Positions 1 to 28,555 of a DNA stretch of 28,555 nucleotides are shown one piece after another (within the stretch, counting starts at the first letter, position 1; each line of letters starts with the position of its first letter). The DNA is from Paramoeba atlantica (taxonomy: Eukaryota; Protista; Discosea): positions 1 through 28,555 of the forward strand of contig CDRNVI010000218.1 in assembly GCA_977017575.1 (NCBI GenBank), read 5' to 3'. Made by a program: the position numbers and the translations under genes. The notes beneath the pieces were generated by a model. It did not search any database. It saw nothing but the letters and a program-made list of their open reading frames with translations, and was not told the DNA's origin.

Positions 1-755
1 CCTAAACCCTAAACCCTAAACCCTAAACCCTAAACCCTAAACCCTAAACCCTAAACCCTAAACCCTAAACCCTAAACCCTAAACCCTAAACCCTAAACCC
101 TAAACCCTAAACCCTAAACCCTAAACCCTAAACCCTAAACCCTAAACCCTAAACCCTAAACCCTAAACCCTAAACCCTAAACCCTAAACCCTAAACCCTA
201 AACCCTAAACCCTAAACCCTAAACCCTAAACCCTAAACCCTAAACCCTAAACCCTAAACCCTAAACCCTAAACCCTAAACCCTAAACCCTAAACCCTAAA
301 CCCTAAACCCTAAACCCTAAACCCTAAACCCTAAACCCTAAACCCTAAACCCTAAACCCTAAACCCTAAACCCTAAACCCTAAACCCTAAACCCTAAACC
401 CTAAACCCTAAACCCTAAACCCTAAACCCTAAACCCTAAACCCTAAACCCTAAACCCTAAACCCTAAACCCTAAACCCTAAACCCTAAACCCTAAACCCT
501 AAACCCTAAACCCTAAACCCTAAACCCTAAACCCTAAACCCTAAACCCTAAACCCTAAACCCTAAACCCTAAACCCTAAACCCTAAACCCTAAACCCTAA
601 ACCCTAAACCCTAAACCCTAAACCCTAAACCCTAAACCCTAAACCCTAAACCCTAAACCCTAAACCCTAAACCCTAAACCCTAAACCCTAAACCCTAAAC
701 CCTAAACCCTAAACCCTAAACCCTAAAACCTAAACCCTAAACCCTAAACCCTAAA
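1..755. repeat. Telomeric array (CCCTAAA)n / (TTTAGGG)n, ~108 units
   Basis: Uninterrupted 7-mer from base 1 to 755, C-rich strand on + as expected for a left chromosome end. One variant unit, ACCTAAA, at 728-734. Confidence 0.99.
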
Positions 756-1840: not shown

Positions 1841-2207
1841 TGACCTGATAATGTAGGGAGGAGACTAAAATTATATGTTTGTATGTAAAAATCATATAAA
1901 TGTTTTCTCAATTATTTTTGTTCTATGAGACAAAATCAAAAATCTGGCTGGTCCAAGTTTTAGAAAATAGTTTTTTTTATTATGTTATCAAAAAAAATGA
2001 GTCCCAGCTCACTTGTTTCCTCAATATGTAGGGTGCCACTTTAAAGTCTTATCATTATATGTGAATTTCATACATAAGACCTCTTCGTAAACTGCCTATA
2101 ACTTTTTGTGACATATTCGGATTTTAAAAAAAAATATGCCATTAGGAAGACAAAAATGAGGCGCATCTTTCTACCAGTCTCGATTTTCCGAATTGTGAAA
2201 AAAGTGG

Positions 2208-2630: not shown

Positions 2631-2678
2631 GAATTGTGAAAAAAAGTGGTTCAAAACAAAGTAATTAGGCCCTAAACC

Positions 2679-7930: not shown

Positions 7931-9082
7931 TTTTTTTTTTTTAAAGTTCAGACACCAGGTGCCATTTATTAGAGTTAAAAAACCATCTCTAGGATGGAAA
8001 AGAGAGGGGAAGAAAGGGGGGGGGGAGGGAAGATAAATTAAGAGTTAGATCCAAAGATCTCTTCAACATGGGATGCATTGGAGTTTCTTTACCAACTTCA
8101 GTTTTCACTAAGGGGTCTGCGTTTGATTGTCCGCCTTCTAAAACCAAGGAGTGAGTTCGGTTTGGAGGTTTCTATGAAGTTAATTACATTCCTTCGAAAA
8201 TCTTCCTCAATAAAGCTCCTCACCAGATTGCTCTCTTGGGACTGATGGAACCATCCTTGGATATCTTTAGTAATTATTACAGGGAGGATTAGAGCATTCT
8301 CAAGAGCAGTTTGGGCTGGAAACAAAACATGGGGGGTTGTCACCGTGTTTCCTTGGAATTTCCTTACAAAATTCCCTGGGGGGATGGGGAAAGTCCAGTC
8401 ATGGGTGAGAGGGGAATTGATCCAGTTCCACAGGGTTGAATTCAAAATAATCCACTCTTCACTGGTTTCTGCAACATGTTGTGATCTTGGATCCCAATGA
8501 TGGTCATTCACAGCACATGTTCCATCCTCTTTAGACCAACTTGCAGCAGTTGCAATTGCATCAGCTCGCTTGTTAAGTTCTTGGGGTACATGGATGAATT
8601 CTATCTCGTCAAAGCACATTGCTAACTTACGGATTTCACAAAGTAGTTCATTCAAGGCATAGTTTTTGATGGCATGGGTTTTGGGTGCAGCCTTGGTGAG
8701 AATCATACAATCCCCAACAACTTCAATCTCATTCATCATTGATCTGGCGCATTGCATTCCTTTCAAACAGCCTGTAAATTCACCAATATTGTTGGACCCA
8801 AGAGGGATGGTTTCAAACCCACCACATATCTCTTTCCCTTCCCTGAAAACTGCAAAGCCCGCACCCCCCAGATGAGGGTCTGTACAGCCTGAACCGTCAT
8901 AAAACACTTGAAAGCCTTTAAATTTAAAACTTTCCTTTTCTTTGGTTCCTTTCTTTGTTTGGGTTCTTGGGGGCCGAGGGAGGATTTTGTTCTTTCTCAA
9001 GATTTTTTCGAAAATTTCAGTAGCATACTGGGGTGATTTCGATCCTTCTGCACACACTGTGAGCCACAAACTCAACAGGGCA
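7931..9082 (-). mobile_element. 5'-truncated non-LTR retrotransposon (LINE) fragment with RNase H
   Basis: Perfect 14-bp TSD ACAAAGCCATTCAA at 7917-7930 and 9083-9096. Poly(A) tail on the minus strand (T12, 7931-7942) and AATAAA at 7965-7970. No RT domain remains. Confidence 0.9.
8098..9082 (-). CDS. C-terminal LINE ORF fragment with type-1 RNase H domain (5'-truncated, open)
   Basis: VFYDGSG (D), SNNIGEF (E), VVGDC (D), HVPQELNKRADAIA (H, D): all four catalytic acids intact and no internal stop. The track start MTLNGFV comes from host sequence and the TSD. Confidence 0.8.
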
Positions 9083-9488
9083 ACAAAGCCATTCAAGGTC
9101 ATCTCCAGGTAAGGTTTTACTCACATGTGTTGTCTTGACAACTCATTCACAAAGATAACATTTCAATCCCATTTTCAGAAACAAACCACAGGAAACACAC
9201 AAAAAGAAAAAACGGGCAAAAAGCTTATCTCAAATATGGGTAATAGACCCTATTATTTAGACACCTAAATTTTGGCTATTTTTTGTTTGCCCATGAATTT
9301 GGTTTGTATTGCTTTTGTTGTGCTTTGAGCAGAAGTTGTAGAAATCATAGTAAATTTAGGAGATTTAAACTGAACTGTTTCTTTGTTCTCTTTGTTTTAA
9401 TAGTAGAAATGTGCCACTCCAGACTGTTGTCCATTCAATATATTCCTGACATGCCTTCTTTAGTCTGATCCAAAGTAGACATGTTTAA

Positions 9489-9995
9489 ACTGCTGCAAGT
9501 TGGTCTAAAGAGAATGGAGAATGTGCTGTGAATAACCATCAATTGAGGATCCAAGAGTTGAAACATATTGTTGGAACCAGTGAAGAGTGGATTGTTCTAA
9601 ATTCAACTTTGTGGAGTTGGATCAATTCCCCTCTAGTCTGTGAACTAGGTGCCTTCTCAATCCCTTCAATGAATTTTGTAAGAAAGTTCCAAGGAAACAC
9701 ACAGTGACTACTCCTCACATATTGTTTCCAACTCAAAGTGCTCTTGAAAATGCTCTAATCCTCTCTCTGTCATTATTACTAAGGACATTCAGGAATGGAT
9801 CCCCCAGTCCCAAGAGAAGGATCTTGTGAAAAACTTTATGGAAAATGACTTTCAAAGGAATGTTAAAAAACTATGTGTTTAAGTCTTAATTTATCTCCCC
9901 TTTCCCCAAGTCCTTTCTTTCCCCCCTTTTCCATCTTAGTGAAGGTTTTTTAATTTCAATAAATGGCATCTGGTGTCTGACAAACAAAAAAAAAA
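9489..9995 (+). mobile_element. Second, more decayed 3' fragment of the same LINE family, opposite orientation
   Basis: Reads TAASWSKENGECAVN...SEEWIVLNSTLWSWINSPL...NFVRKFQGNT...KDIQEW...DFQRNV with frameshifts, homologous to 8098-8550. Shares the 3' UTR ending AATAAATGGCA(C/T)CTGGTGTCTGA plus an A-rich tail (9981-9995). No TSD found. Confidence 0.85.
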
Positions 9996-10045
9996 CCCCT
10001 ACTACATGACCAAGCTACATTGTACAGCACATTGTACAGCACATT

Positions 10046-13000
10046 TTAATTTTCTTTTTTTGTTTGAGCTGGTTTTCTAGTTAGTCCCTAAATCAAAAAA
10101 ACAAAAAGTGAGATTCCATTTCTTTCCCACACAATATTATTATTTTAAAAATGAAAAAAATTGAAACAAAAAAAATGAAAAAAAATCAAACCTTTAATTG
10201 AATGATTAGTTCAACAATGCTTTCATCTTTTGCAACATCAAGTACTGTTTGTCCATTCTAAAAACAAGAAAAGAAAAGAAGTTCAAAAAAAAAAAGCTCA
10301 CTTTTCCAATAACCCCACAAATAAAAAAAATAGCAAAATAAAGAAATAAAGAAGAAAAAAAAAACATCAAAAAAAAAAAGAAAAAAAAACTTTGTTTTGA
10401 ATATTAACATTGGCACCATACCCAATCAAAATCTGTACAATTTCTTCAAAACCATTAGAAGCAGCTATGTGAAGGGGGGTCCAACCATTCTAAAATATTA
10501 AAAAAGAAGTGTTAAAAAAGAGAAAAAAAATAAAACAATTATAAAACCCATTAATTCCCCTCTCTATCACAGCAATATAAAAAAAGAGAATAGATTTTTA
10601 AAAAAGAGAAAGAAAATGAAAACTTTATCTTGATGACATATGTCAGACCCATGTTCAATAAGAATTTTTACAACTTCTTCAAAATCTTTGGAAGCAGCTG
10701 CATGAAGAGGGCTCTGACCAATCTGAACATAAAAAGAAGTTTAAAAAAGAAAAAAACATATATCATACATAATATCAGAGAATAACCAACACAGATTAGA
10801 AACACCAAAAAAAGAAAAAAGAAAAAGAAACAATATCAACAAAAAGAACCTTATTTCCAAGATCAACATTTGGTTTTCCTTTTTCCAATAAAATTTGAAT
10901 AATTTGTTCATGTCCATTATGAGCAGCAATATAAAGAGGAGTTACTCCTTTCTTTTTACATTAAAAAAAAAAAAAATAGAAAAATGAGAAAGTGAAAAAA
11001 AATGAGAAAATGAAAAAGAAAACACAATCAACAAAATAACACCTTAGTTACAAGATCAACATTTGCTCCACCTTTTTCCAATAAAATTTGAACAATTTGT
11101 TCATATCCTTCTTGAGCAGCAATAAAAAGAGGAGTTGCTCCATTCTTTTTACATTAAAAAAAAAAATAGAAAAGTGAAAAAGTGAAAAAAAAAGAAAAAG
11201 AAAAAGAAAAAGAAAAAGAAAACAATCAACAAAATAACCTTATTTGCAAGATCAACATTTGGTTCTCCTTTTTCCAATAAAATTTGAACAATTTGTTCAT
11301 GTCCTTTAAAAGTAGCAACAAAAAGAGGAGTTGCTCCATTCTTTACATTAAAAAAAAAATAGAAAAATGAAAAAGTGAAAAAAAAAAAAAGAAACAATCA
11401 ACAAAAAAGAACTTGGTTTGCAAGATCAACATTTGCTCCACCTTTTTCCAATAAAATTTGAACAATTTGTTCATGTCCTTTTTGAGCAGCAATATAAAGA
11501 GGGGTTACTCCTTTCTTTACATTAAAAAAAAAAAATAGAAAAATGAGAAAGTGAAAAAAATGAGAAAATGAAAAAGAAAAAAAAACACAATCAACAAAAT
11601 AACACCTTAGTTACAAGATCAACATTTGCTCCTCCTTTTTCCAATAAAATTTGAACAATTTGTTCATATCCTTTTTGAGCAGCAATAAAAAGAGGAGTTA
11701 CTCCATTCTTTACATTAAAAAAAAATCGAAAAGTGAAAAGTGAAAAAAAAAGAAAAAGAAAAAGAAAACAATCAACAAAAGAACTTGGTTTGCAAGATCA
11801 ACATTTGCTCCACCTTTTTCCAATAAAATTTGAACAATTTGTTCATGTCCATCCAAAGCAGCAATATAAAGAGGAGTTGCTCCATTCTTTACATTCAAAA
11901 AAATAGAAAAATGAAAAACTAAAAAAAAAAAAAAAGAAAAAGAAAAAGAAACAATCAACAAAATAACCTTACTTGGAAGATCAACATTTGCTCTTCCTTT
12001 TTCCAATAAAATTTGAACAATTTGTTCATGTCCTTCTTGAGTAGCCATAAAAAGAGGAGTTACTCCATCCTTTACATTAAAAAAATAGAAAAATGAGAAA
12101 CTAAAAAAAAAAAAAGAAGAAAAAGAAAAAGAAAAAGAAACAATCAACAAAATAACCTGATCTGCAAGATCAACATTTGCTCCTCCTTTTTCCAATAAAA
12201 TTTGAACAACTTGTTCATGTCCTTCTTGAGCAGCAATAAAAAGAGGAGTTGCCCCATTCTTTTTACATTAAAAAAAAATAGAAAAATGAGAAAGTGAAAA
12301 ATAAGGAAAATGAGAAAAAGAAAAAGAAAAAGAAAAAGAAACAATCAACAAAATAACCTGATCTGCAAGATCAACATTTGGTTTTCCTTTTTCCAATAAA
12401 ATTTGAACAACTTGTTCATGTCCTTCTTGAGCAGCCATAAAAAGAGGAGTTGCTCCATACTTTACATTAAAAAAAAATAGAAAAATGAGAAACTGAAAAA
12501 AAAAGAAAAAGAAAAAGAAACAATCAACAAAATAACCTTACTTGGAAGATCAACATTTGCTCTTCCTTTATCCAATAAAATTTGAACAACTTGTTTATGT
12601 CCATTTTGAGCAGCAATAAAAAGAGGAGTTGCTCCATTCTACATTAAAAAAAAAATAGAAAAATGAGAAACTGAAAAAAAAAAAAAGAAAAAGAAAACAA
12701 TCAACAAAAGAACTTGGTTTGCAAGATCAACATTTGCTCCACCTTTTTCCAATAAAATTTGAACAATTTGTTTATGTCCATTTTGAGCAGCAATGTAAAG
12801 AGGAGTTGCCCTATCCTTGACCAAAAAAAATTGAAAAAATGAAAAACTGAAAATGAAAGAGAAAAAGAAACAATCAACAAATAACCTTGTTTGCAAAATC
12901 AACACTTGGTTTTCCTTTATCCAATAAAATTTCAACAATTTGTTCATATCCATTTTGAGCAGCAAAAAAAAGAGGAGTTCTTCCATACTTTAGTTGCAAA

Positions 13001-14169
13001 AAAAAATCGAAAAATGAGAGAAAGTGAAAAAAAAAAAAAAAAGAAAAAAAAAAAATCAAATTCAAATTATCATCATAATATCATAATATCATAAAAGAGA
13101 AGAAACCATATCTGCAAGATCAACATTTGGTTTTCCTTTTTCCAATAAAATTTGAACAATTTGTTCATATCCTTCTTGAACAGCAAATTGAAGAGGAGTT
13201 GTTTCATGGAACTAAATAAATTTTAAAAGATAAAGTGTTTTGTTCAAAAAAAAAAAAAGAGAAAAAGAACCAAAAATGAATTTCAAAAAAGAAACAAAAA
13301 AGAAACAAAAATTGTTTCTATTGAAATTTTAAAAAAAAATGAAAAAAACTTGTTCAACAGCATTGATATTAGCTCCTTGATGTAATAACAACTCAATCTT
13401 CTTTCCATCTCCTTTGAAAGAACCACAGTGGAGATCTGTTATTCCAAACTGTTTTTGTTTTTTGTTTTTTGTTTTTTGTTTTTTGTTTTTTGTTTTTTGT
13501 TTTTTGTTTGAAAAAAAAAGTTAAAATTGTGCTCCAATTTCCACCCCTCTCTCTCTCTCCCAAAAAAGTTGAAAAACATAATATCCATTTTTTTAAAAAA
13601 AGAAAAGAAAAAAATAAAAAGAACATTGGGGTATTCATGTTTTTCCACCATCTCAAAAAGTATCCCAATTTGAATCCAATTGTGATCCACAAAAGCAATT
13701 TTGAATAATTCCTTTTGTTTTTCAAAAATATAATTAAAAAAGATTAATTTAATATTAAATCAAAATAAAATGTTGTTTCATTGAATCAAGACATAGACAA
13801 AAAGAGAAAGAAGAAGAAAGAAAACAAAGAAATAAACAGTCAGAAAAAAGAAGCAGAAAAAAGAAGCAGAAAAAAATGATTGACACAAACCTCAAATGAT
13901 TTTTCTTTCAATTCTTTTCTCATTTTCTCTTCTTCTTCTTCTTTTCTCTTCTTCTCTTCTTCTTCAATTCTCAATCTCACTGCTTCAAGTTCTTCATTTT
14001 CCACTTTCGGTCTTTTAATCACTCCCTTTCTTTGTTTTTCTCTCCCTTTCTCTTCTTCTTCTTCTTTTCTCTTCCTCTTCCTCTTCCTCTCTTCGTCTCT
14101 TCTCTTCTCAGGACTCTCTCTTTCTCTCACCACCTCCTCTTCCATCATATTTCTCTCATTCGAATTCAT
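10046..14169 (-). CDS. Ankyrin-repeat protein, 20 exons, ~699 aa, ~16.5 ANK repeats, one per exon
   Basis: Exons: 14169-13891, 13711-13625, 13448-13350, 13211-13107, 12987-12886, 12815-12714, 12638-12537, 12459-12358, 12258-12157, 12069-11968, 11886-11785, 11707-11606, 11514-11413, 11340-11239, 11144-11043, 10951-10850, 10722-10624, 10489-10391, 10257-10192, 10087-10046. All introns are GT-AG and phase 0, and the spliced frame is open. Repeat consensus xGxTPLxxAAQxGHEQIVQILLEKGxxNVDLxxx. The terminal exon is the least certain. Confidence 0.88.
10850..12987 (-). repeat. Tandem array of 12 ANK exon+intron cassettes (102-nt exons, ~170-205-bp period)
   Basis: Twelve 102-nt exons. Introns share GTT(A/C)TTTTGTTGATTG at the 5' end and mostly T-run-AATGTAAAG at the 3' end. 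Confidence 0.93.
13451..13510. repeat. (TTTTTTG)n microsatellite in ankyrin intron 2
   Basis: Direct reading of the sequence. Confidence 0.85.
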
Positions 14170-14266
14170 TTTGGAAAAGTAAAACAAAAATAAAACAAAA
14201 ATAAAAAGAGAAAAAAAAGCCACACAAAAAATGAATAAAATATGGTTTGCTAAATAAGGAATAAAT

Positions 14267-14276
14267 CCAAATAAGG
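14267..14276. promoter_or_regulatory. CArG box CCAAATAAGG upstream of the ankyrin gene
   Basis: Exact CC(A/T)6GG match ~100 bp before ATG 14169, with near-match CTAAATAAGG at 14250-14259. Function unproven. Confidence 0.3.
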
Positions 14277-14971
14277 AATGAAGTGATCCGTTTCCGAATT
14301 TTCCAAAAACGACAAAATTTGGTTTTGCTTGATTGGTTGATTCGGTTTTCCGAAAAGAAAGATAGGGAAACAGAGGTTTCTCTCCTCTCTCTCCTCTCTC
14401 TCTCCTCTCACTCTCCTCTCTCTCTCCTCTCTCCTTACTCTCTCCCTCTCCTTTCTCCTCTTGATTGAAAAAAATCCTTCTTCTCTTTCTATCCCTCATT
14501 TTTGAGAAAAATGTGTCAGCAGTGAGATATTATTGAAGAAAGATTTTCTCCTTCTTGTGTGTGGGAAAAATATTGGCTCAGAAAAAACTGTTGGAAAAAA
14601 GGAAAGAGAGAGCTTATCAACCTTAATTTTTTATCATTGAACTGACACACAGAGAGAGAGAGAGAAATAGGGTTGTGGTCTGTTTTTCAACAAAAAAGAA
14701 AGAAATCGTTTAGCGTTGTTGTATGTTGGGGTGGGGGGAGGGAGAGAGGATATGGTTGGTTTGGAACGAGAGTGTGGTGGGGGTTGGGGATGTGTTGTGT
14801 AGAGAGGATGGTGTATGTACTTCGAGAGTCCTCCGTTGTAATCAATGGATTCTTCTTTCATCAGTCCATTGGAGGGGTGAAGAGAGAGAGGGAGAGGGAG
14901 AGGAAGAGAGAGAGAGAGAGAGAGAGGGTGGGAGGGAGGATGGTCTTGTCAGTATGAAAAAAGAAGAAGAA

Positions 14972-16456
14972 TCAATCTTGTTGATGCGAAAATAGGGACG
15001 CTTCTCCTCCTTGTAAATAATTCTGAGTTGGTGCTGGGGGATCATTTTGTTGTTGGTGATGGGAGTGGGGGTGGTGGAGGTGGTGGTGAGATGAGTATTG
15101 GGGGGGGACGTGGTGGTGATGTGGTGGCAGTGGTGGTTCTTTTTCTTGGAGTGGTAACAACAACCCACCACCCCTTGGCCAAGGTTTTAGAGCGTTTTTG
15201 GAGGTGATGGTGGTGGTGGTGGGTGGGTGGTTGAGTGGTTGAAACCGCTTTGTGCTGCTGCTGAAGAGGAGGTTGTTTGGTGAGGGAGTGGAGAGAGGGA
15301 TGGGAGGGAGGGTAATAATGGAAGAAAGAGAGGGGAGATGATGATGATGATGCTTTTGTTGTTGTTGTTCTGATTGTTGATGGGATGGTTTTGGTGGTGG
15401 TAGTCGTGGTGATGAATCAAAAATTGGTCCTCTGCTGCTGCTGATGGATTTAAAAGGAAGAATAATATTGGGGTGATGATTTCCTTCTTTTGAAGGGAGG
15501 ACGGAGGGTAGAGAAGAAGAAATTTGTTGTTGTAGGGGAGGTAAGAGAGGAGTGGCGGCAGTGGTGGTGATTGTGGCGGCAGTGACAGCAGCAGTGGAGG
15601 AAGTAGCACTCCTTTTTTGTTGTTGTTGTTGCTGTGAGGAAACAAAAGAAGAAAAAGAAGAAGAACCAGAAAAATGTTGTTGTTCTTGCATATTGTCATG
15701 TTGATCCACAGAATAATCATCAGAATGACCTTCTCCTATGGATTGTTGTGATTGTTGTTGTTGTGTTGCAACACATTGTTGTTGTTGTTGGAATGAAGTT
15801 GTTGTTGGAATTATTGATGAGGTTCTTGTCACCAACTCGCTCTCACCAATCTGCTGAAATCGAGAGTTTTCAACAACAACAGGGTGAGGAGAAGAAGGAT
15901 AATGATGATGAAAACATTCTTCAGAAGAGATTGGGGTCATCTTTTCGAAGAACCGCTGCTGCTGCTGCCTTTGAAAAATTCTTGGTGGTGTTGGTGATGG
16001 CATTAATATTTCTTGAGGACTCATCATCATCAAGTCCTCTTCCTCTTCCTCTTCTTGATGAATTTGTTGTCTCTTCTTCTGTTGCTGATGATGATGTTGA
16101 GTAGTTGGTGATGTTGGAGGAGAAGGAAGAGGAAGATAATGTTCACAGAAGAAAACTTTTGATGCTTGAGGAGGGGGTTGAGAGTGGCAATAGAGCCTGG
16201 CATAGTCTTCATTCCGCAAGGCTCGAACACGACAAAAATTCTTTATCTTCTTTTCAAAATCTTCTGGAGAACAGGAAGAATACTGATACAATTTTGGGGA
16301 CTTTGAGTTGGAGATTATTGTCAAGGAAACTTGGCACCCACAGAGAATCGAGATTTCCATTGCTTTCTTGATTAGACCACTCTTTCTTTTCGAAAACGTA
16401 TTTTGTTGGAATCGCCTATCTGAAATTTTCTTGATTGGTAGTTTCTTTCTTCCCAT
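14972..16456 (-). CDS. MADS-box transcription factor, MEF2/type II-like, 494 aa
   Basis: N-terminus MGRKKLPIKKISDRRFQQNTFSKRKSGLIKKAMEISILCGCQVSLTII...KLYQYSS, followed by a Q/H/P/S-rich low-complexity region. Single open frame. Confidence 0.92.
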   Translation of the reverse strand: MGRKKLPIKKISDRRFQQNTFSKRKSGLIKKAMEISILCGCQVSLTIISNSKSPKLYQYSSCSPEDFEKKIKNFCRVRALRNEDYARLYCHSQPPPQASKVFFCEHYLPLPSPPTSPTTQHHHQQQKKRQQIHQEEEEEEDLMMMSPQEILMPSPTPPRIFQRQQQQRFFEKMTPISSEECFHHHYPSSPHPVVVENSRFQQIGESELVTRTSSIIPTTTSFQQQQQCVATQQQQSQQSIGEGHSDDYSVDQHDNMQEQQHFSGSSSFSSFVSSQQQQQQKRSATSSTAAVTAATITTTAATPLLPPLQQQISSSLPSVLPSKEGNHHPNIILPFKSISSSRGPIFDSSPRLPPPKPSHQQSEQQQQKHHHHHLPSLSSIITLPPIPLSTPSPNNLLFSSSTKRFQPLNHPPTTTTITSKNALKPWPRGGGLLLPLQEKEPPLPPHHHHVPPQYSSHHHLHHPHSHHQQQNDPPAPTQNYLQGGEASLFSHQQD

Positions 16457-16999
16457 TTTTCTTTTCTCCTCTCAGCTCTCAGCCTTTCTTTCTCAGCCTT
16501 TCTTTCTCTGTCTTTCTTTCTCTCTTTTCTTTCTCTTTTCTTTTGAAGCTTTCTTCTCTTCAGCCTCTCTCTATTTTGTGTGACCGTTTCGGGGCAGATT
16601 CCTTTTGTTCTTCGTGGCCTAAAAAAGAGTATTATTTTTCTGCAAGATTTCTACAACTAAACTCTTTTTGAACACAGAACTTTTTTTTGGCAAAAAAACT
16701 GTTTGGGAACAAAAAGAAACAAAAGAATAATAAGAAAGAATAATGTATTTTTTGTTTTGGTCTTTTTCTCTCCTCTCCTCTCCTCTCCTCTCTTCCTCCC
16801 CCTATTATCTTCTTCCTTTCCCTGTTCTCATTTTTTTTTTTGTTTTGTGATGTGATTTCTTTTTTTCTTCATGTGTGTGTGTTCGTTCCCTTGAAGTGAG
16901 GTAAAGAGAGAAATCAGATTTTTTTTTGAAAGTGATATCTAACAAACACTTTGAATAATAGACACATAAAGCACCCCCCAAGGAGCCCAAAAAAAAATA

Positions 17000-18050
17000 T
17001 TGTTGAAATCAACAAATGAAAAATATGTTCTTCTCTGAACGGCTGGGGTCAGTTTTCTTTTTGTTTTCTTTTCGCCAATTTGTGCGTCCCTCTTTTCCTT
17101 TTTTTTTTCTTTCTTTTGCTTAATTTTTTTTGTTTGTTTTTCTTTCCTTATTTTAGAAAAAAGAAAGGAGAGGGGTTGTGCACTACTGGCTTCCAAAGGG
17201 TTCGCTGTGTTGCGTTTTTCCCCTGAGGAAGGAATAAGGAATCATCCCCTGAGGAAGTGAGGGACTCCCTTAAGAAATCAAACACTGCTATCCAATCTTC
17301 AGGGTTTAGATGTTCCTTCCTCCCAGCATGTCAATCCCCTCCTCTGGTGGTGCGGTTTCCGCGGATATAAATGCTTTCTTCAAAGTGCATTGCCTCGGAG
17401 GTTCTACGAAATGAGTCAGGAGCTCATATGGACACAGAGGTACCACTTTGAAAAGTTTCCATTCACTCAAGTGAAAGTGATCGTATGCTTAGAGGAGGGC
17501 CTGACGCTGCTGGGGTGAGTTGCTTCTCCAGAAGTCTTCAAAAAGACATTTGGTGAGGTTTGGTTTGAACTCAAAGAGCGGGATTGGTAAACTGAAATCC
17601 AGGAGCCAAGAAAGGCTGTCTGATGGGTGTTCCTTCTAAGAGTAACTTAAACCCCCCCCCTTAAACCTTTTGACTTTGGGATGCCAGCAGCTTCTATCTG
17701 GGAGCGGTGGAGTTCTTCATTTGGGTGGAAAATACATTGTTGAAAATCAACGATGAAAAAAATACTCTTCTGCGATCGCCGGGCAGTTTTTTTTTTTCTC
17801 CGTTCTTTTCGTTTTTTTTTTTGGGGGGGGATGAAAGAAATTTTTTTCTTTTCTTATTTTAGAAAAAGAAAGGAGAGGGCTTCACACTGTCCTGCATTCT
17901 GTAGTGAAAGGCCAGAGAAGATTTTTTAGAGAGGGGGTATTATTGAAATCAACAATGAAAAATACTCTTCTGTGAACGGGTCAGTGTTTTTTTTTACCCC
18001 CCCTTGTTCTTTTCGTTCTTTTGGCCAATTTGAGCGTCATTCCTCTTTCT
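17000..18050. repeat. Three degenerate direct copies of a 100-190-bp element starting with a hairpin
   Basis: TTGTTGAAATCAACAA...GAAAAATA(T/C)..TCTTCT at ~17000, ~17737 and ~17940. Copies 1 and 2 also share TTATTTTAGAAAAAGAAAGGAGAGGG (~17146-17175, ~17853-17879). Confidence 0.65.
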
Positions 18051-18108
18051 TTTGGTTAATTTTGTTTTTCATTTTATTTTTCGAATTTTTTTGAATAAAG
18101 ATAAAATT

Positions 18109-18525
18109 TTATTTGAAATCAAATGGTTTTCAAAGAAGGGGAATAACGGTCGAGGATGAAGATGCTGGGAGAAAGATGATACATCACCTAGGAGATCGGA
18201 GAGAGGATAATATTTGTTTAAGGGTCTGTTTCTCCTCAGGGGTGGTGTCTTTGTTCCTTCCTGCATCATTGAAGTCTGCCTCATTTAGTGGCCACTCTCA
18301 ACATATTCCCCTTACATATCATAATTCTTTGTATTGGTGCGCGGGTGACTGAGGGTGTCACCCATGTGTGTCAGAGCGGGGCTTGTTGGGTTGTCGGATC
18401 ACATGCCAAAAGCGTGTGGGGTTTCGTGGCTGGACACAACCCCCGAAACATCGATGCACAGTGCATCACCCAGGTTTTGGCCTCCAATGTCCCACAAAAC
18501 CACACACACAAACTGTTGATTTCAT
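18109..18525 (-). pseudogene. Unassigned Cys/His-rich 139-codon frame with six in-frame TGA
   Basis: ATG 18525 to TAA 18109: MKSTVCVCGFVGHWRPKPG*CTVHRCFGGC... Internal stops at 18466, 18358, 18319, 18298, 18184 and 18130 are all TGA. The frame coincides with a GC-richer island in AT-rich flanks. Confidence 0.4.
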
Positions 18526-18644
18526 TGAATTTTAATTTTATTTTTGATTTGGTTTTCTCCAAGTATTTAGGAAGGGTTTGCTTTTGAGGAATCTTGCTGA
18601 CTTGAAAAAAGAACGGAAATATAAAAATAAAGACAAATTGAAAA

Positions 18645-19778
18645 TTATCCTTCCCATTTTAATATATCAACTTTGTCTTTGTTGTGTTCAACTTTTACAT
18701 GACAACAAAAACTGTGAATACAAAAGGTAACTGGAACAAAAAAGATGACAATCCCAATTCCCACAAACACAAAGAAAACTGGATTGAATGTAAATTCACC
18801 AGGAGGATTCAATGGAAAACATGGAGTTTCTTCATCCATGACACACATCCCAGTCCCTTCTTCAGAGCAACAACAGGGGAGTGGACAATTAATGAAATTG
18901 TTTCTCAGGTCAAAATCAATTGAGCAAAGCCAAGTTTCTGGATCAAGAACCCCACTCAAAGAATTGGATTTCAAATTCCTAATGAAAAAAATCAAAATTA
19001 AACAAAACAACAAAGTTGTTTGAAATAATAATAATAATAAAAAGAACGAACAATTTTTGTAATTTGTAAGGGTCAAATAATTCAGATGGAACTGTTGTTA
19101 TGAGAAAGCAACCTAAAAAAAATCAAATCAATTCAAAAAAAAATCTGAGGAAAAAAAAAAAGGAAGGAATCACAAACAAGTTTTGCATTTTGAAAATTTC
19201 TCCAATTTCTGTTGGAATTTCTCCTTCGAATAAATTAGAAGTTAGATCTCTGCAAAAGAAAAAAAAATTAAAAAGAAGAGAAGGTTTGAGAAAGAAAGAA
19301 GAAGAAAAAAATTATGTTATTCAATAATATTTGAGAAAGAAAATATTCATACAAATTCGATAATCGAGAGATTTCTCCTATTTGGGTTGGAAGAGTTCCA
19401 TTGAATTGATTTCGAGAAAGGGACCTTTGAATAAAGGAAGTCAAAAAAAAAACATACAATAATAAAAATTATTATTATTTATTATTTATTTATTATTATT
19501 TAATATTTATTTCTTATTTATTATTTATTATTTATTATTTATTTATTTATTTATTTATTATTATTATTATTTATTTTAAAAAGAAAAAACATCATACACG
19601 ACAGTCAAATAAGAGAGTCTTCCAATTTCAGTTGGAATTTCTCCCTCTAACAAGTTGAAATTGAGATAACTAAAAAAATTCAAAAAAAAAAATCAATCAG
19701 TTTCAACAAAATAAAAAGAAAAAGAAACAGGTAATTTAAAGAAGAAGGATAGCCAATTTCAGTTGGAATTGTCCCAAT
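18645..19778 (-). pseudogene. LRR receptor-like transmembrane protein (plant-type 24-aa LRR), 5'-truncated and frameshifted
   Basis: 72-nt phase-2 exons 19669-19598, 19424-19353 and 19249-19178 (LxLxxNxxxGxIPTEIG). Exon 19112-19052 is 61 nt (11-nt loss, frameshift). Exon remnant 19778-19729 lacks an acceptor AG. Last exon 18978-18645 has an LRR, a Cys-rich cap, TM helix VFFVFVGIGIVIFFVPVTFCI and a short tail. No start or signal peptide found. Confidence 0.75.
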
Positions 19779-20211
19779 CAAGAAAAAAAAGAAAATAAAT
19801 AAAATAAATAAAATAAAATGAAAAAAATTGAAAAAAAAAAAATAAAAAATGAAAATTAAACTCAATTTCAATATTTTTCATTCTTCATCAATTAAAAAAA
19901 AAAAGAAAAGAAAGAAAAGAAAGAAAAGAGAAATTAAACATTTTAGTGATTTAATTTGACAAAAAAATAAAATAAAATAAAATAAAAAAAAAAGAAAAAT
20001 AAAATAAAATAAAAAAACAAAAAATTTTTAAAAAAATTCTTTTGAAAAAGAGAAAAATAAAAAGACTACAAACACTTTTTTGTCCCTGCAAACACCCTGC
20101 ATTTTGGGGTTCCCATGGGGCTTATTTAGCACAAAAATGGGTCAAAACCAAATTAGTTAACCACCAAATATCAGGAAACAACCAAATATCTAACACAAAA
20201 AGAATTATTCT

Positions 20212-23200
20212 TCATCCAAAATTTTTGTAACAAAACAGCCGCAAAGTCCCATCTGTTGATGAAGAAAAAACAACTGACATTTTTTGATTTCCCCCAACTG
20301 CCCGACTAGGAACAGCCAAACTGCTTACATTCCCATCATGCACATCTTCTTCGCTCAATAGAGGGTGCAAAAGAGGAGAACGGGTTTCAATCTCCCATCC
20401 AATCACATTCCCTGTTGCAGCTGTCCCTCCCCAAATCTCATTGGGTCCAACCTGAACAAGGCAACTGAGAAAGGCATCTGAAGGGACTTCAACTTGATCA
20501 ACAAGAACGAGCTGTTGATGATCACCACTATCTATGGATCGGAAGATTAAGATTTTTTCTCCATCATAAGCCCAGATCTCTGGCCCCTTTTTAGCAGTTT
20601 GAGAGGGAAGAGGGAGAAAATCCTCCTCCTCCTTTTCCTCTTCCTGTTTTTCTCTAATCCCTCCTCTGTTTCCAACCACCCAATTCCCATTCCACACAGA
20701 AGTCAGACACCGAATGTAAGAAGAGCCACGATCTTTCTCTTGACACCACCCAACACCACCCATCATTTTGTCACTTCCACCTTGGATCTGGATCATACCC
20801 ACAGCATTACCAACTGCCAGACAGAGAGTACTTTTTCCTATAGACACCATTCCACTCCTGGCAGTGTTCTGAAACCGACCTTCAATCCCTGACTGGTCCA
20901 GTTGCAACACTCTCTTTGTCTCAATTCGTGATGTCCGATGCAACCCATGTTCATCTTCAACCGTAATAAGAGTGAACTCAACAACTTGAAAAGCATTTGT
21001 AAAGCACACACTATGTCCCACTGCTTCCAATCCCAAAAACCCTAAACCCTTCTTTGAGCCAGCCTCATCTCTACCATCCTCACCAATGCTGCTGCTATTT
21101 TCAGGTTGTTTCACACCAAGACAAAGGAGAGAAAGATCAAATAACAGCATTCTGGAAAATTGTTCCAAGGCACTCAACCACTGAGAAAGAGAGGGTGACC
21201 CTCTCATGTTCTCTTCAGCTTTGGCAACAGCAAATTTGAAAGTTTTGTTTTGTTCAGGGCACTGAATTTGAATGGTTGGTCTTGGGGTTGAGAGGAAGGA
21301 TGTGACAACTGTGTTTTTGTTAATCAAAATAGAATCTTCTTCTGTTCCAAAATATTGGTGCTTAAAGATACGAAGTCGACCTGTATCAAGACTCACCCAC
21401 ATATCTTCACTCCATAAACTCACTTTCCTCAACCAACCCTTGATGTTGAAGTGCTCAATTGCATCCTCACAATTCAAAGGTGCATCTTTCCAAACTCGGA
21501 GCGTCCCACACATTGAACTTGTCCAAACATGACCCCCAAATGACTGGTAGACCATTGCTCTGACTTCTTTTTTATGTGTGTCTTTTTCGTTACATAAAAT
21601 CAGTTTTGGGTTTCCTCCAATTGCCTTCTTCACCTCAATCACACCGACATACCCATTCCAAAATCCAATCCAAAGCCAATCAAGACCTGCAAAGAGAACC
21701 CTCTTCACTTTCCACTTTTCCTTCACAGACATCATTTCTGACAATCGCAGCGTGGCCACAGAGAGAGAATGGTGAGAATGCCTTGAAGGATGATGAGCAT
21801 CCGCCGCTGTTACATCAATCTCTTTCCTCAGTTGATCCAAAACCCCGACCTGATTCAAAACCTTATGGAACAAGGGGGATTCACCTTGAATCATCTCAAA
21901 TAGAGACTCACAAACTTGGAGGGCAGTTGGACGGCGAGAAGGTTGATGATCCCAGCAAGAGTTCATCAAGTCTAGATACTTTTTCAACAGCTCAGGATTG
22001 TTTTCATTTTCATGCTCAAGGACAGAGCGAGGAATTGAAGGACGCCCCTTTTTGCGAATAAATCCTTTCAACACTTCCATCAACTCAACCTCCAAATCAA
22101 AAGAGTAGGGATAACGACGCACTAAAATCTCCCATAACATGATTCCAATTGCGTGAATGTCAATCTTTTCGGTGAATTCTTGCCCCTTCAACACTTCAGG
22201 TGCTGCCCAAGTTGCGGTCACACATTCAGTTTTGGAATTTTTTCCTCCAACAAGAGAAGAAGCACCAACAAGTTTCACAGACCACCCAAAATCACCAACC
22301 TTCGCCAATGGCTCTCTCAAGGTCTGTTCAGTTATGGGAAATTGAATCAGAGAACGAGTGAGAAAGACATTGGGAGTTTTAAGATCACGGTGAATGATAG
22401 GGGGATTCAGAGAATGGAGATAATGAATGCCCAGAGCAATGTCAAAAGCAATTTTGAGGCGAAGAACCCAAGGGAGGGGAGCATATATTTCGGTGGTCTC
22501 ACGAATGAGATCTTCAACCTTCTTTGAAGTCTCTTTCAAATTCTCAAAGACCCGTTTTTCTTCTTCAGAACCCTCAAAGTTTCCTTCATATCCTCTTTCA
22601 ATCCCAATCTTGAGAGAGTCTCTCAAGGCATTGATTTGCTCCCCATGGCTCCCCCCTGCTATACCCAACCATTTGTCAAAGTATTGGTTGAGTTTTTTGA
22701 AGGCACCATCACATAAATGAAGAAGAGGAGGAAGGGGTGCAGGAGCAGGGAAAACACTTGGTTTGACAAAGTGGAGATTCAATTGACTTCGATAACTCCC
22801 AACTGATTTGATCACACTGTCAATAAGAACCAAAAGATTTAATCCCATGAAATTGATTTGCCCATAGAGGTCTCCTCCACCAACTAATTCCATTACCATT
22901 GCATGGTTATGATGAAATTCATTGAGTGAACCAGAAAGAGGATGAGTGATCCCCACTAACCTGACAATATTGGGATGAACAAGCCCTGTCATTGTGTACA
23001 CTTCCAATAGAAAGTCTTTTTGCAGTCCTTCTTCAGTTGGTGGTTTCTTCTCATCACTTCCAATCATCTGGCAAGAGTCTTGAGCCAGTTTTACATGTTT
23101 TGGCTCAAGAACTTTTGCTGCATATGCAAAGTGGGTTGATTCTCTTTCCTCTCTTTCAATCAGAGAGGAAAGAGAAGGTGAGGGTGGAGGCAAATGTGAA

Positions 23201-26200
23201 GGTGAAGATGGGGAAGGAGAGGGGGAAGGGGAAGGGGAAGGAGAGGGGGAAGGAGAGGGGGTAGGAGAGATTGATTCAGTCACATTTTCTTTTAAATACT
23301 CTAGGATTGGAACAGGAGTATGGTTTCTCTTCCTCTTACCAAGATGCAATGTTTGTCTACAATTTTGACAGAGAAATGATTCATCTTCTTCACATTGATC
23401 GCAAAAAAACTTGACTTCTTGTCTTTCACAATACTCACACAGAGAGGGAACTGAAGGAGGGAGTATTGAGCAAGGTGGGTCTGGGAAGGAAAGAGGAGGA
23501 GATGGTGAAGATATTGAAGGATGAGGGGAAGCAAGAAGAGAAGGAGGAGAAGAGGAAGATAGTTTCCTCTCACCGGAACTTAATTTTTGAAAATTGATTG
23601 ATGAAGAACACAACAGGACTTTTCCAAAAGACCCTTGGCCAAGTTCTTTCTCAATCTCTAAATCCTCCCAACTGACAAGAGAAAGAGTAGAAGCCTCTTG
23701 AATGAGAAGATCAGGAACAAGATATTGTAATGCAACATTATGGCTCTTGTTCTGACAGAGGGCAGTGACTTTCCTTTGAGCAAGGATTTTGTACAAATAA
23801 CTAAATTTATATTGACATGGAAAACAACTCATCCCTCCACCTTCTCCATAATATGCCACTTCCACATCATAATCCATATGATAAAACTCTTCCAACATAT
23901 TCTCAAGAGATCTCATTACCTCCTTCATCCACCATCCTGCCACCTCACTTGACACCCCTTCCAACTTAAGATTCAGTTTGTCTCCTCGTTTTTTTTTCAC
24001 AAGACAATAACACTCCACTGCTTTTTTTGACAACCCATCTGCTGCAGGATAAATAGCTACTGCACAACCTTGTTGCCAACACTCAATCACTTCACCAATC
24101 TTCATCAACTGCACAATCACCATTGGCATCACAGCAACAGGAACAGAAGCTTGATTCTTCATCTTGAAAGTCCGATCCAGGACCACATGATGATGATGTT
24201 GTCCTCCAATCCGAAACTCAAACTCACTCTCAATTCTGTGATTATGCTGAGGCTCATTTTCTTTTAAGAGACAGGGAACAAAGTATTTTTTTCGTTGTTG
24301 CTTTTGGTTGGGAGATCGAAGAGGAAACATGATATGAAGTTGCATCAACAGATTAATCATGTCTTCATGGTATCGCTTGGGAAAATCTTCTTCTTTACGC
24401 CAAAGGTGCAAGGTGAGAGTGTCATGGTCAATCACCCCCCCAGAAGACTGAGCAAAGGAGTGTTTGGTTGTGATAAGAGTTGCAAGTAGACGAGAGATCC
24501 ATTGGGGATTCAAAACGACCGCCATTTCAGTAGAAGCAGGACCCTCCTCTTTGGAAGAAGAGAGAGTTAACATTCTCCTTGGGCGAACAAGGTAGATGTA
24601 TCCGAGAGTATCTAAGTCTTCTAAAAATTCCATACATCTTTCTTCATCTTCTAATGCTTTGATACCTTTCTTGATTCCTTCAAATTGGATCACTTGATGA
24701 ACAAGAGAAATTTTTACGATTGGGCCCTGTTTTAAAGTTTCCAAAGCAACTCGAATCACTTCAAGAGGAGCAGGTGCATCAAAGGCCACTTCGTCACTCA
24801 CTTTCAGCAATACATCCCTCAATGCTTTCGCTCCTTCATCCATTACTTTTCGGTTAAAGAATGACTTCTTGACCCACTGCAGCATCACTGCCTGAGGATA
24901 GATCTTCTCTTCGCCATACCGAGCAATCAAGGATCGATGGAGGTGTTTGTGAGCAGCTTCTGCTTCATTGGGTTTCAACCTGTCCCCATTTGTTGTGATC
25001 AAAAGAATCCGAACCCTTTCTGTACGAGATAAAACAGACTCAATCCAGAAATGAAGTTCCCTCAGAGCATCCTCAGGAGCATCATTTACACGACAGACCA
25101 CAGTATAAATACAAAAATCACGGAGAAACAATTGGTGACTGATTCGATAAATCTTCTGTCCACCAAAATCCCAAGTTTCAAGAATGGTCCCATCTTTCAA
25201 CACAACATCCCCTAACTCAACACCGTCAGTCGAAAGAGGGATGTTCTCCATTTGTTGCCCATCATCTCTCAGTCTTCGAATCGTTGTTGTTTTGCCAACT
25301 GCTGGCCCACCCATCACCATCAATCGCAATGCTTTCATCTTCACCATCCCACCTTCCAACTTTGCCTTACAATACTCAATGATATTTTTTGGTGATTCCC
25401 CAGCTTTGATCTTATCAAGTTTCCTCCAATTTTCGCTTGTCATAAATTCGATTTGTTTGATTGCTTGAGGAGACAAGTACGCAAGGCCAACGGGGAGGCT
25501 GGTGACATCTTTTTGGTGAATAACTCTGACATGAGTGAGAAAAGGACCAAGTAGCGTCCAATCTATGCTGTCCAACTTCTCATCATTGATTTCAAGGGAA
25601 GGGTTGGCAAGTTCGAGAACTCCCGTTTCAATTGAACTGAAAAGAAGTTGTTTTAAAGAATAAAAATTCCCTTCCAATTGGGAAAACATTTGAGGAGAAT
25701 GGAGATAAGATCGAGCAAACTCTCTTGTTATTCTCCCTGATGACCGCGTCTTTTTCAAGGAAAGAAAAATATCGGTCAAAAAGAGAAAGGAAAGGAGAAA
25801 GTGAGGAAAGAGAGAAACACACACCTTCGAGGGCATTGACCCAGCTGCCAAAAGTATTGAAACGACTCGATTTCTCCCTTCGATTTGTTGATCGTTTTCT
25901 GGTTTCATCTCCAAAGCACACGCAAGTTCAGTTTGATTACCAAGCTTGTCTTGATCAAGTTTGGCGAACTGTGATTTGAGCAAATGTTCTAGAATTTTAC
26001 TTTGCCATCGATATGCTGCGTAGTGTATCATTGACTTTCTCTGAGAAAGGGGGAGGTGAGAAAGAAAAAGACTAAAAGACTAAAAGAGAAAAGAGAGAAG
26101 AAAAAAAAAAACCATGTAATCGAGTTTAACAATGTCAGAATCATATCTTAAGAGAAGGAGAACAATCTCGACTCGATCTTCTGATTCTTCCTCAATATCA

Positions 26201-28548
26201 CAAGCAAGATGTGATAAAGTATTTGCGTCCTATCACATCCTCTCCATTAGTAATTACTCCTTTCTTTCTTCTCTCTCTCTCTTCTCTCTCATCTCTCATC
26301 TCTCATCTCTCATCTCTCTTCTCTTCTTATGAAAACAAACAAAAAAATTATTTCTTCTTGATTTTCTCCTTTTGTTTTCTTATTTTTCTTTTTTTTTCTT
26401 TGTCTTTTGTTTTTGAATTGTTGTGTTGGGATGGTATTTTTTCTTTGACAAAAATTTTTCAATTGAAAACCTCTGGAGTGAGTACAATGTCCTTCTCCAA
26501 TTGTGGGTGAGAACGACAAAAAGGATTGTTACCAACACTGTCAATAAAAATTAATAAAAAAAAAAAAGAATAAAAAAAAAAGAAAAATTCAAAAAAAAAA
26601 AAAAGAAAGAGAGAAAAGGAGAGAGGAAAAAAGTGAGAAAGGAAAAAATCTAAATCTAAAAGAAATTTAAATATTTGAAGAGAAATAAAAATCCAAAATA
26701 AATATATTTATTTATTTAGAGAGAGAAAGAGAGAGAAATAGAAATAAAACTTGAAAATAAGAAAAAAAAATACAAAATACAAAATACAAAATACAAAAAA
26801 AAAAATATAAAAATTTATCTTCACAAAAAAGAAGAAAAGAGAAGAAGAAGAGAAAAAAAGAGAGAAAAAAAGAATGAAAAAAGAGAAAAAAAGAAAAAAG
26901 AGACAAAAACACAATTCAGAAATAAAGAGAGAAAACAAAATGAAAGCAAAACTGAAGTGTTTGAAGTGTTGCATTTGTTGAGAGGGACTTACCAATCTCT
27001 CTCGCTCCTTCATCTCCAATTTTATTGTTATCAAGGCTGTGTGTGTTGGAAAAAGAAAAGGAGAAAAAGAGAGGAGGAAGAGAAAAGAGAAGAGGGAAAA
27101 GAGGAGAGAAAGATAAGAAGAAGGAGAGAGGGAAAGAAAGAAGAGAGAAGAGAGAGAGAGAGAGAGAAGAGAAGAAAAGAGAAGAAAAGAGAGAGAAAAG
27201 AAGGAAAAAGAAGAAAAGAGAAGAAAGTGAGAGAAAGAAAAAAAGTGAGAAAGAAAACTAAAAATCCAAAATAAATATATTTATTTAGAGAGAGAGAAAA
27301 AGAGAAAGAGAGAGAAATAAAAATCCAAAATAAATATATTTATTTAGAGAGAGAGAGAAAGAGAGAGAAATAAAAATAAAACTTGAAAATATGAAAAAAA
27401 AATACAAAATCCAAAATCCAAAATATAAAATATAAAAATTTATCTTCACAAAAAAGAAGAAAAGAGAAGAAGAAAAGAAGAGAGAAAAAGAATGAGAAAA
27501 GAGAAAAAAAGAAAAAAGAGACAAAAACACAATTCAGAAATAAAGAGAGAAAACAAAATGAAAGCAAAACTGAAGTGTTTGAAGTGTTGCATTTGTTGAG
27601 AGGGACTTACCAATCTCTCTCGCTCCTTCATCTCCAATTTTATTGCCACCAAGGCTGTGTGTGTTGGAAAAAGAAAAGGAGAAAAAGAGAGGAGGAAGAG
27701 AAAAGAGAAGAGGGAAAGAGGAGAAAAAGATAAGAAGAAGGAGAGAGGGAAAGAAAGAAGAGAGAAGAGAGAGAGAAGAAAGAGAAGAAGAAAGAGAAGA
27801 AGAAGAAAAGAGAAGAAAAGAGAGAGAAAAGAAAAAAAAAGGGGAAAGAGGGAAAGGGAGAAAAGAAGGAAAAAGAAGAAAGTGAGAGAAAGAAAAAAAG
27901 TGAGAAAGAAAAATAAAAATCCAAAATAAATATGTTTATTTAGATAGAGAGAGAGAAAGAGAAAGAAATAAAAATAAACCTTGAAAATATGAAAAAAAAA
28001 TACAAAATACAAAAATATTATTTATCTTCACAAAAAAAGAAGAAAAGAGAAGAAGAAAAGAAGAGAGAAAAAGAATGAGAAAAGAGAAAAAAAGAAAAAA
28101 GAGACAAAAACACAATTCAGAAATAAAGAGAGAAAACAAAATGAAAGCAAAACTGAAGTGTTTGAAGTGTTGCATTTGTTGAGAGGGACTTACCAATCTC
28201 TCTCGCTCCTTCATCTCCAATTTTATTGTAACCAAGGCTGTGTGTGTTGGAAAAAGAAAAGGAGAAAAAGAGAGGAGGAAGAGGAGAAGAGGGAAAGAGG
28301 AGAGAAAGATAAGAAGGAAGGAGAGAGGGAAAGAAAGAAGAGAGAAGAGAGAGAGAAGAAGAGAAGAAAAAAAGAGAAGAAAAGAATGAAAAAAGAGAAA
28401 AAAAGAAAAAAGAGACAAAAACACAATTCAGAAATAAAGAGAGAAAACAAAATGAAAGCAAAACTTAAGTATTTGAAGTGTTGAATTTGTTGAGAGGGAC
28501 TTAGCAATCTCTCTCGCTCCTTCATCTCCAATTTTATTGTTCCAAAGG
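20212..28548 (-). CDS. Roco-family (LRRK-like) GTPase-kinase, 5'-partial, at least 2090 aa: RI-type LRRs-ANK-ROC-COR-TKL kinase(+B-box)-WD40-like propeller(+PH)
   Basis: Exons 28548-28465, 28237-28154, 27654-27571, 27036-26953, 26537-26471, 26229-26113, 26040-25825 and 25749-20212 splice in frame. ROC: GGPAVGKTT, STDG, WDFGGQ. COR: LNPQWI, YFVPCLL. Kinase: GQGSFGKV, AAK, HRDLKTPN, DFG, APE. Confidence 0.9.
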
Positions 28549-28555
28549 CTGTGTG
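26538..28555 (-). repeat. Tandem LRR exon+intron cassettes of the Roco gene (84-nt exons, 311-618-bp period)
   Basis: Four 84-nt phase-2/phase-2 exons encoding LxxNKIGDEGAREIGKSLSTNATLQTLH. Intron ends are near-identical and intron interiors are GA-rich microsatellite. The array runs off the window edge. Confidence 0.93.

Follow-up and report, generated by a model that had tools for sequence, protein, structure and literature searches.

The window analyzed here is the whole of contig C218 (CDRNVI010000218.1; 28,555 bases) from the 45.7-Mb, 248-contig assembly of Paramoeba atlantica (GCA_977017575.1). It begins with a (TTTAGGG)n telomere array, read on this strand as CCCTAAA, and carries three genes built from protein repeats. 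These are an ankyrin-repeat gene, the remnant of a gene encoding leucine-rich repeats (LRRs) and a transmembrane (TM) helix, and a Roco gene with a predicted N-terminal LRR module. All three are encoded on the minus strand and lie between 10 and 28.5 kb from the telomere. Exon reading confirmed the original prediction that three genes within 30 kb of a telomere are built with one repeat per exon. Short GT-AG introns of 70-130 nt occur in the window, and published data on the host genome of Paramoeba (PMC5601477) agree with them. Parts of the locus were also found on contigs C198 and C163 of the same assembly and on contig ctg3801l of an independent ENA assembly (ERZ24900291). Coordinates are collected in Table 1.

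The ankyrin gene contains sixteen exons that encode one repeat each. They are 99-105 nt long and in phase 0. The range and phase are those originally predicted; the predominant length is 102 nt (34 residues), not 99 nt. A script check passed 15 of the 16, all bordered by AG and GT and all in phase 0. Repeat exons were searched against Pfam one at a time. Lone ankyrin exons filled positions 1-33 of PF00023 with 38.4 and 49 bits (cut-off, 21.1), and most repeats have one loop residue more than the 33-residue model. The exon-plus-intron unit measures ~175-200 bp. Mean identity between units is 88% in the exons and 81% in the introns, and the best pair reaches 97% and 94.5%. Several pairs have introns that are 93.5% identical and exons that are only 85-86% identical. 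The reading frames stay open in three versions of the gene, those of the window, C198, and the ENA contig.

The Pfam scan placed a Roc domain followed by a COR domain in the body of the gene at 20212..26040, which makes it a member of the Roco family. Its LRR module contains four exons of the predicted size and phase, 84 nt (1 nt, 27 codons, and 2 nt; phase 2), with identical splice sites. The exon-plus-intron cassettes (26953..28555) are spaced 311-618 bp apart. Four is a minimum, because the array is cut off by the contig end at 28555. The copy on C163 has a complete 5' end, with a first exon and four cassettes, and it was the only copy in which the 5' exon was located. Scored as single exons, the 27-residue units reached 16-19 bits against LRR_6, below the cut-off of 23.4; the motif L-x-L-x-x-N-x-I-G-D-E-G-A is evident on reading.

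The domain order of the Roco gene was compared with that of LRRK-type proteins (ANK-LRR-Roc-COR-kinase-WD40), and this assignment was rejected. The ankyrin-like exons come after the LRRs and not before them, a B-box precedes the kinase, and the Pfam scan found no WD40 match in the unassigned C-terminal 560 residues. The B-box zinc finger is followed by a proline- and serine-rich low-complexity stretch, and both lie between COR and the kinase core. All three copies keep the B-box, with in-frame indels nearby. The copy on ctg3801l has a 10-nt gap in the COR region relative to the other two. It may be frameshifted or contain an assembly error, since it is called there as two open reading frames (ORFs). 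A protein database search with the N-terminal 700 residues retrieved no transcripts. It retrieved only ENA genomic ORFs (51-90% identity) and distant Roco proteins (21-35%).

The LRR-TM gene is a pseudogene remnant in the window. Three exons of 72 nt in phase 2, the size and phase predicted, are intact. The prediction that one gene is decaying was correct and understated the damage: the 5' part is missing, and an 11-nt deletion and an in-frame TGA interrupt what is left. An LRR receptor-like protein, with signal peptide, a plant-type ectodomain of 24-residue LRRs, a single TM helix, and a short tail, was considered and rejected for this copy, which lacks its 5' part and is frameshifted. The gene had been proposed as the source of a surface receptor, and the copy in the window is dead. 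In the paralogue on C198, no fewer than 19 exons measure exactly 72 nt, and the 72-nt architecture is therefore real, though the window copy is a pseudogene. A signal-peptide exon was sought in the intact C198 gene; no clear candidate was found. Single 23-residue exons gave no Pfam match, and the 24-residue motif and TM helix were seen by reading only. The family is small, with 8 matches in a search of the genome. The truncation junction of the remnant is identical in C163 and in the ENA copy.

Table 1. Features of the window and of related loci on other contigs
Feature	Position	Strand	Basis
Telomere array (CCCTAAA)n, ~108 copies	1..755	no strand	Tandem Repeats Finder, period 7, 99% matches
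Ankyrin-repeat gene, intact, 20 exons	10046..14169	-	Sequence reading and exon finder (AG/GT, open phase-0 frames)
Ankyrin gene, exon 1; K/R/E-rich, basic run resembling a nuclear localization signal	14169-13891	-	Sequence reading
Ankyrin gene, exon 2	13711-13625	-	Sequence reading
First one-repeat ankyrin exon, 99 nt, divergent repeat	13448-13350	-	Sequence reading only
One-repeat ankyrin exon, 105 nt	13211-13107	-	Exon script check
Core ankyrin array, twelve 102-nt phase-0 exons, each with a 70-99-nt intron	10850..12987	-	Exon script check
Two 99-nt one-repeat ankyrin exons	10722-10624, 10489-10391	-	Exon script check
Half-repeat ankyrin exon	10257-10192	-	Sequence reading
Last ankyrin-gene exon, ends in stop	10087-10046	-	Sequence reading
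SRF-type MADS-box gene, intronless, 494 residues, between the repeat genes	14972..16456	-	PF00319, 57.8 bits
LRR-TM pseudogene remnant	18645..19775	-	Sequence reading, comparison with C198 paralogue
LRR exon stub, 47 nt, no acceptor	19775-19729	-	Sequence reading
Three intact 72-nt phase-2 LRR exons	19669-19598, 19424-19353, 19249-19178	-	Comparison with C198 paralogue
LRR exon, 61 nt, with 11-nt frameshifting deletion and in-frame TGA	19112-19052	-	Sequence reading
Terminal LRR-TM exon: cysteine-rich cap, TM helix, short tail	18978-18645	-	Sequence reading
Roco body, open frame 20212-26031	20212..26040	-	Pfam scan
Roc domain of Roco, residues 236-348	24988-25326	-	41.5 bits (cut-off 27)
COR-A domain of Roco, residues 502-589	24265-24528	-	41 bits (cut-off 35.3)
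B-box of Roco	23308-23445	-	Pfam scan
Protein kinase domain of Roco	21901-23034	-	Pfam, 115 bits
Tentative ankyrin-like Roco exon between LRR module and body	26113..26229	-	Sequence reading only
Terminal LRR exon of Roco, 67 nt, phase 2 at its start and phase 0 at its end	26471..26537	-	Sequence reading; recurs on C216, C235, C197
Four 84-nt RNI-like LRR exons of Roco	27036-26953, 27654-27571, 28237-28154, 28548-28465	-	Sequence reading
LRR module with Sel1-type genes	C216 1-8200; C235 1-2810; C197 14895-17079		PF08238, 88-91 bits

The window is a mosaic of sequences found at other chromosome ends. Positions 9536-19727 match C198 5604-15883 at 91-98% identity. C198 begins with a telomere and carries the ankyrin gene, a MADS-box gene, and the full LRR-TM gene; a sequence search of it gave no Roc match. 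Positions 19008-28555 match C163 31715-41641 at ~95%. C163 also begins with a telomere. Its first 31 kb differ from the window, and it carries the Roco gene without the ankyrin block. On the ENA contig, the Roco gene, the stub of the LRR-TM gene, and the ankyrin gene are side by side. It does not contain the sequence of window 14213-19218, where the TM exon, the MADS-box gene, and a repeat element lie. Its start was inspected for a telomere, and only a low-complexity contig end was found. All mosaic breakpoints lie in or beside the LRR-TM gene. The three genes had been taken as a single locus or functional trio. This did not hold, as C198 lacks Roco and C163 lacks the ankyrin block; the genes are neighbors through rearrangement, not a conserved unit, and probably not a coevolved system.

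The LRR module of the Roco gene is also joined to other gene bodies. Its cassettes, the terminal exon, and ~300 nt of the next intron recur on C216, C235, and C197 with 80-95% identity. The exon that follows there, across a phase-0 junction, opens a Sel1-repeat gene and not a Roco body. Homology of the module ends within the intron that follows the terminal LRR exon. All three Sel1-fused loci are within ~17 kb of a telomere array, and C235 also bears ankyrin genes of the window's family. The Sel1 gene on C216 continues for ~7 kb in open frames, in which no Pfam match was found. C216 was considered as the continuation of C218 and ruled out, as the arrays point in opposite ways. A further ankyrin gene with one repeat per exon lies on C163 (42250-43700), divergent to the Roco gene there. 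On C197, ~2 kb of nontelomeric sequence with compact ORFs (within 1-2900) precedes the CCCTAAA array of 125 copies; this start is possibly a misjoin or an internal telomere-like array.

Numbers of cassettes differ between the versions of the locus, as the original prediction of birth-and-death turnover had it, and one gene is a pseudogene remnant. Counted from the 105-nt exon onward, there are 15 one-repeat ankyrin exons in the window, 14 in C198, and 12 in the ENA contig. The inner repeats have no one-to-one correspondence between versions. The Roco gene has at least 4 LRR cassettes in the window, 4 in C163, and 5 in the ENA contig, and the order of the binding-face variants differs between copies. 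Four contigs end inside LRR-cassette arrays. The arrays break the assembly, and copy numbers from short contigs are therefore minima. Identical ankyrin-exon match scores at a constant offset were seen on C178 (90.8-97.8 kb) and C207 (0.2-4.5 kb), and the assembly therefore holds redundant copies of some regions (haplotigs or overlaps).

Variation in the Roco cassettes is concentrated on the predicted binding face. Among 13 cassette exons, all 16 variable columns alter an amino acid. Twelve of these 16 fall within the split codon or codons 2-5, together the x positions of the L-x-L-x-x-N strand. The nonsynonymous difference (pN) is 0.42 in the face codons versus 0.043 in the rest of the exon, in a small sample. 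There are zero synonymous differences outside the face codons. The p-distance is 0.079 in the exons and 0.061 in the introns. These distances, together with the identities between ankyrin units, bear out the recent duplication of exon and intron that had been predicted for two genes. The Roco body differs from its two other copies by a synonymous divergence (dS) of 0.034-0.061, with a ratio of nonsynonymous to synonymous divergence (omega) of 0.30-0.33. Omega in the kinase is 0.10-0.14. The body is thus conserved by purifying selection, the kinase included.

In the ankyrin array, nonsynonymous divergence (dN) at binding positions chosen a priori is 0.41-0.53. The intron p-distance is 0.145, and dS in the framework is 0.06. 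Framework codons have an omega of ~1.1-1.7, at very low divergence. Within the face codons, dN/dS is only ~1-1.5. These comparisons therefore make a suggestive case for adaptive change in the ankyrin array and a stronger one in the Roco LRRs.

Related ankyrin arrays appear moderately enriched near telomeres. A search of the genome with one ankyrin exon gave 121 matches, which were grouped into 40 loci on 26 contigs (150 of 512 candidates scored). Telomeres were verified by inspecting contig ends, for 20 of the 26 contigs directly, and the lengths of most of the 26 were checked as well; a boundary pattern (21 sites) missed known arrays. Fifteen of the 40 loci are no more than 30 kb from a verified telomere, versus 16.4% of the sequence of the same contigs (binomial P of ~0.001), with a query that is itself subtelomeric, loci that are not independent, and a fragmented assembly. 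All matches to the ankyrin exons, LRR cassettes, and dispersed repeats of the window are on contigs numbered C137 or higher, as is every telomere located in the assembly. Diversification at subtelomeres had been proposed for this locus. The mosaic with its ectopic rearrangements is in line with that proposal, and the apparent telomeric enrichment of the ankyrin family gives it moderate support.

The remaining sequence of the window is of other kinds. Tandem repeats lie beside the telomere at 929-2207, one with a period of 194 nt in 2.8 copies (79%) and another with a period of 401 nt in 1.9 copies (98%). Positions 2200-9740 are transposon debris. It contains a DDE_Tnp_4 fragment (6448-6849), an ORF with a SWIM finger (5527-5985), and an RNase H/RVT_3 ORF (8101-9102), whose C-terminus is present again as a second partial copy (9528-9707). 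Positions 2206-2633 were found again on C163 and C180 with 95-97% identity. The MADS-box gene encodes a glutamine- and proline-rich tail and is not a repeat gene. Its copy on C198 is 98% identical, and the ENA version of the locus does not contain it. Between it and the LRR-TM gene is a dispersed repeat in two segments (17413-17727 and 18152-18461). At least 30 copies of this repeat are on contigs C137-C182 with 73-75% identity, the segments always ~840 nt apart. It is probably an inserted mobile element.

Taken together, the locus probably consists of ordinary germline genes for repeat proteins in a reshuffled subtelomere of an intron-rich protist. The arrays would have grown through tandem duplication of an exon-plus-intron unit, and this would be why the repeat exons are symmetric and repeat sized. 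The zone would be reshuffled as segments are duplicated or deleted and as chromosome ends recombine ectopically, and the 5'-truncated and frameshifted LRR-TM gene would have arisen as a by-product. The other two genes, for the ankyrin protein and for the Roco GTPase-kinase with its N-terminal LRR sensor module, appear to be functional and to evolve fast at their predicted ligand-binding surfaces. Change there may proceed through unequal crossing-over or gene conversion of cassettes and through substitutions on the binding face. The variation may be adaptive, and the products are putative recognition or sensor proteins. Several points weigh against this account. The splice sites of all exon models rest on consensus and conservation. 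The 13 Roco cassette exons are few and mutually nonindependent, and the contig stops inside their array, so that the count in the window is only a minimum. The low dN/dS of the ankyrin face codons belongs here as well: an excess in that gene appears only against introns or framework synonymous sites, where gene conversion or splicing signals may hold divergence down. The versions of the locus may be alleles or paralogous chromosome ends, which are indistinguishable here. An ankyrin gene and an LRR-cassette gene are found together at several ends (the window, the ENA contig, C163, and C235), so that some functional linkage is conceivable.

That recurrent pairing, near telomeres, also bears on the originally predicted idea of a dedicated locus of cassette-diversified receptors. 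In such a locus, the receptor at the cell surface, the sensor-kinase in the cytosol, and the nuclear binder would use their exons combinatorially, for example through alternative splicing, and so generate recognition diversity for innate immunity. Skipping of any cassette exon would be neutral for the frame, the Roco cassettes share identical splice sites, and the focus of variation on the binding face would suit such a locus. The one-LRR exons of brown-algal ROCOs are reported to be alternatively spliced (PMC11378527). However, the LRR-TM member is dead in the window, in C163, and in the ENA copy, and the trio is not conserved. Symmetric exons arise automatically from tandem duplication of exon and intron, and alone they are therefore no evidence of a diversification device. 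We consider a dedicated locus very unlikely. Neutral turnover is another alternative: concerted evolution would homogenize the arrays, and the variable positions would be unconstrained surface residues with no role in recognition. The ankyrin omega values in face and framework fit it, the high intron identity is what recent duplication or gene conversion would leave, and subtelomeres tolerate junk, here the transposon debris (2-9.7 kb) and the dead LRR-TM gene. Against it, the ankyrin frames are open in three versions, and in several ankyrin units the exon has diverged further than the intron of that unit. The Roco cassettes have many amino acid changes with no synonymous change outside the face codons, and their exon divergence exceeds both that of their introns and the dS of the Roco body (0.034). 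Neutral turnover as the whole explanation is unlikely.

An artifact of assembly would make C218 a chimera of C198-like and C163-like ends joined via the repeated LRR-TM exons. The switch between homology blocks does fall in a 0.7-kb overlap (19008-19727) common to all three contigs, and the assembly is redundant and breaks at LRR arrays. A misjoin is nevertheless most improbable, because a second contig supports each junction of C218. The junction of the Roco gene with the LRR-TM stub is found in C163 and the ENA contig too, and the independent ENA contig also has all three genes adjacent. There is also a bolder reading than the reshuffled subtelomere. Chromosome ends would hold an inherited, modular recognition repertoire in which the LRR module is recombined via a phase-0 intron onto Roco or Sel1 bodies beside hypervariable ankyrin binders. 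Ectopic recombination between subtelomeres would be its engine, and skipping of symmetric cassette exons might diversify it further. The result would be an immune-like system in Amoebozoa with an evolutionary origin independent of NLRs. We regard such a repertoire as doubtful.

Good descriptions of candidate pattern-recognition repertoires exist for animals, plants, fungi, and brown algae but hardly for amoebae, which encounter bacteria and giant viruses. This lineage also has a eukaryotic endosymbiont. The locus offers named exons with codon differences on the binding face and arrays that vary in length. It also offers a natural case of one LRR sensor module on two different signaling bodies and a dated succession of rearrangements in a subtelomere, by which one receptor gene was inactivated.

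The locus has features of several known systems. Subtelomeric contingency families include var, VSG, and the yeast FLO/PAU genes. Like these, the genes of the window are adjacent to a telomere, in mosaic ends common to several chromosome ends, with pseudogene remnants. Unlike these, the proteins are predicted to be mostly cytosolic. Repeat-per-exon genes are also found in animals and plants. In human ankyrin genes, single exons of 99 nt each encode a 33-residue repeat; LRR exons measure 84 nt in genes of the NLRC type and 72 nt in plant SERK genes. They share with the window an exon size equal to the repeat size and a symmetric phase, and the architecture is therefore a common outcome of exon-plus-intron duplication. 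A literature search on 84-nt LRR exons in NLR genes gave nothing useful. The animal and plant arrays are old and diverged, whereas introns in the window are still 81-94% identical and copy number varies between copies of the locus. Fungal NLRs, as reportedly described by Dyrka et al. in 2014, have near-identical tandem ANK, TPR, or WD repeats with hypervariable binding positions and a number polymorphism attributed to unequal crossing-over. Unlike the repeats of the window, those of fungal NLRs are usually not one per exon and are C-terminal to NACHT or NB-ARC. The ankyrin gene of the window lacks a nucleotide-binding domain; its N-terminal exon is simply basic.

The LRR-ROCO genes of brown algae, which are candidate immune receptors (Zambounis et al. 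2012; Teng et al. 2024), are a close precedent, as are the fungal NLRs. In the brown-algal genes each LRR occupies a 72-nt phase-2 exon, exons are shuffled and alternatively spliced, and positive selection acts on the concave face (PMC3341825, PMC11378527). The Roco gene of the window likewise has one LRR per phase-2 exon, tandem duplication and shuffling of exons, rapid birth and death, and a predicted N-terminal LRR module before Roc-COR. Cassette turnover of the brown-algal type was found in its differing counts and face-variant order, and the excess of variation on the concave face was found as well. The exons of the window differ in being 84 nt, encoding a 28-residue RNI-like LRR, and not 72 nt. 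The gene has only 4-5 cassettes, and it has ankyrin-like, B-box, and kinase parts. Its position is subtelomeric, whereas the brown-algal ROCO papers contain no discussion of telomeres (PMC3341825, PMC11378527). The organism is an amoeba-like protist, whereas brown algae are stramenopiles. The mechanism is the same as in brown-algal ROCOs and fungal NLRs and is not a new diversity machine. The case differs from the known systems in the 84-nt repeat type, the Roco domain set, the subtelomeric position, and the lineage.

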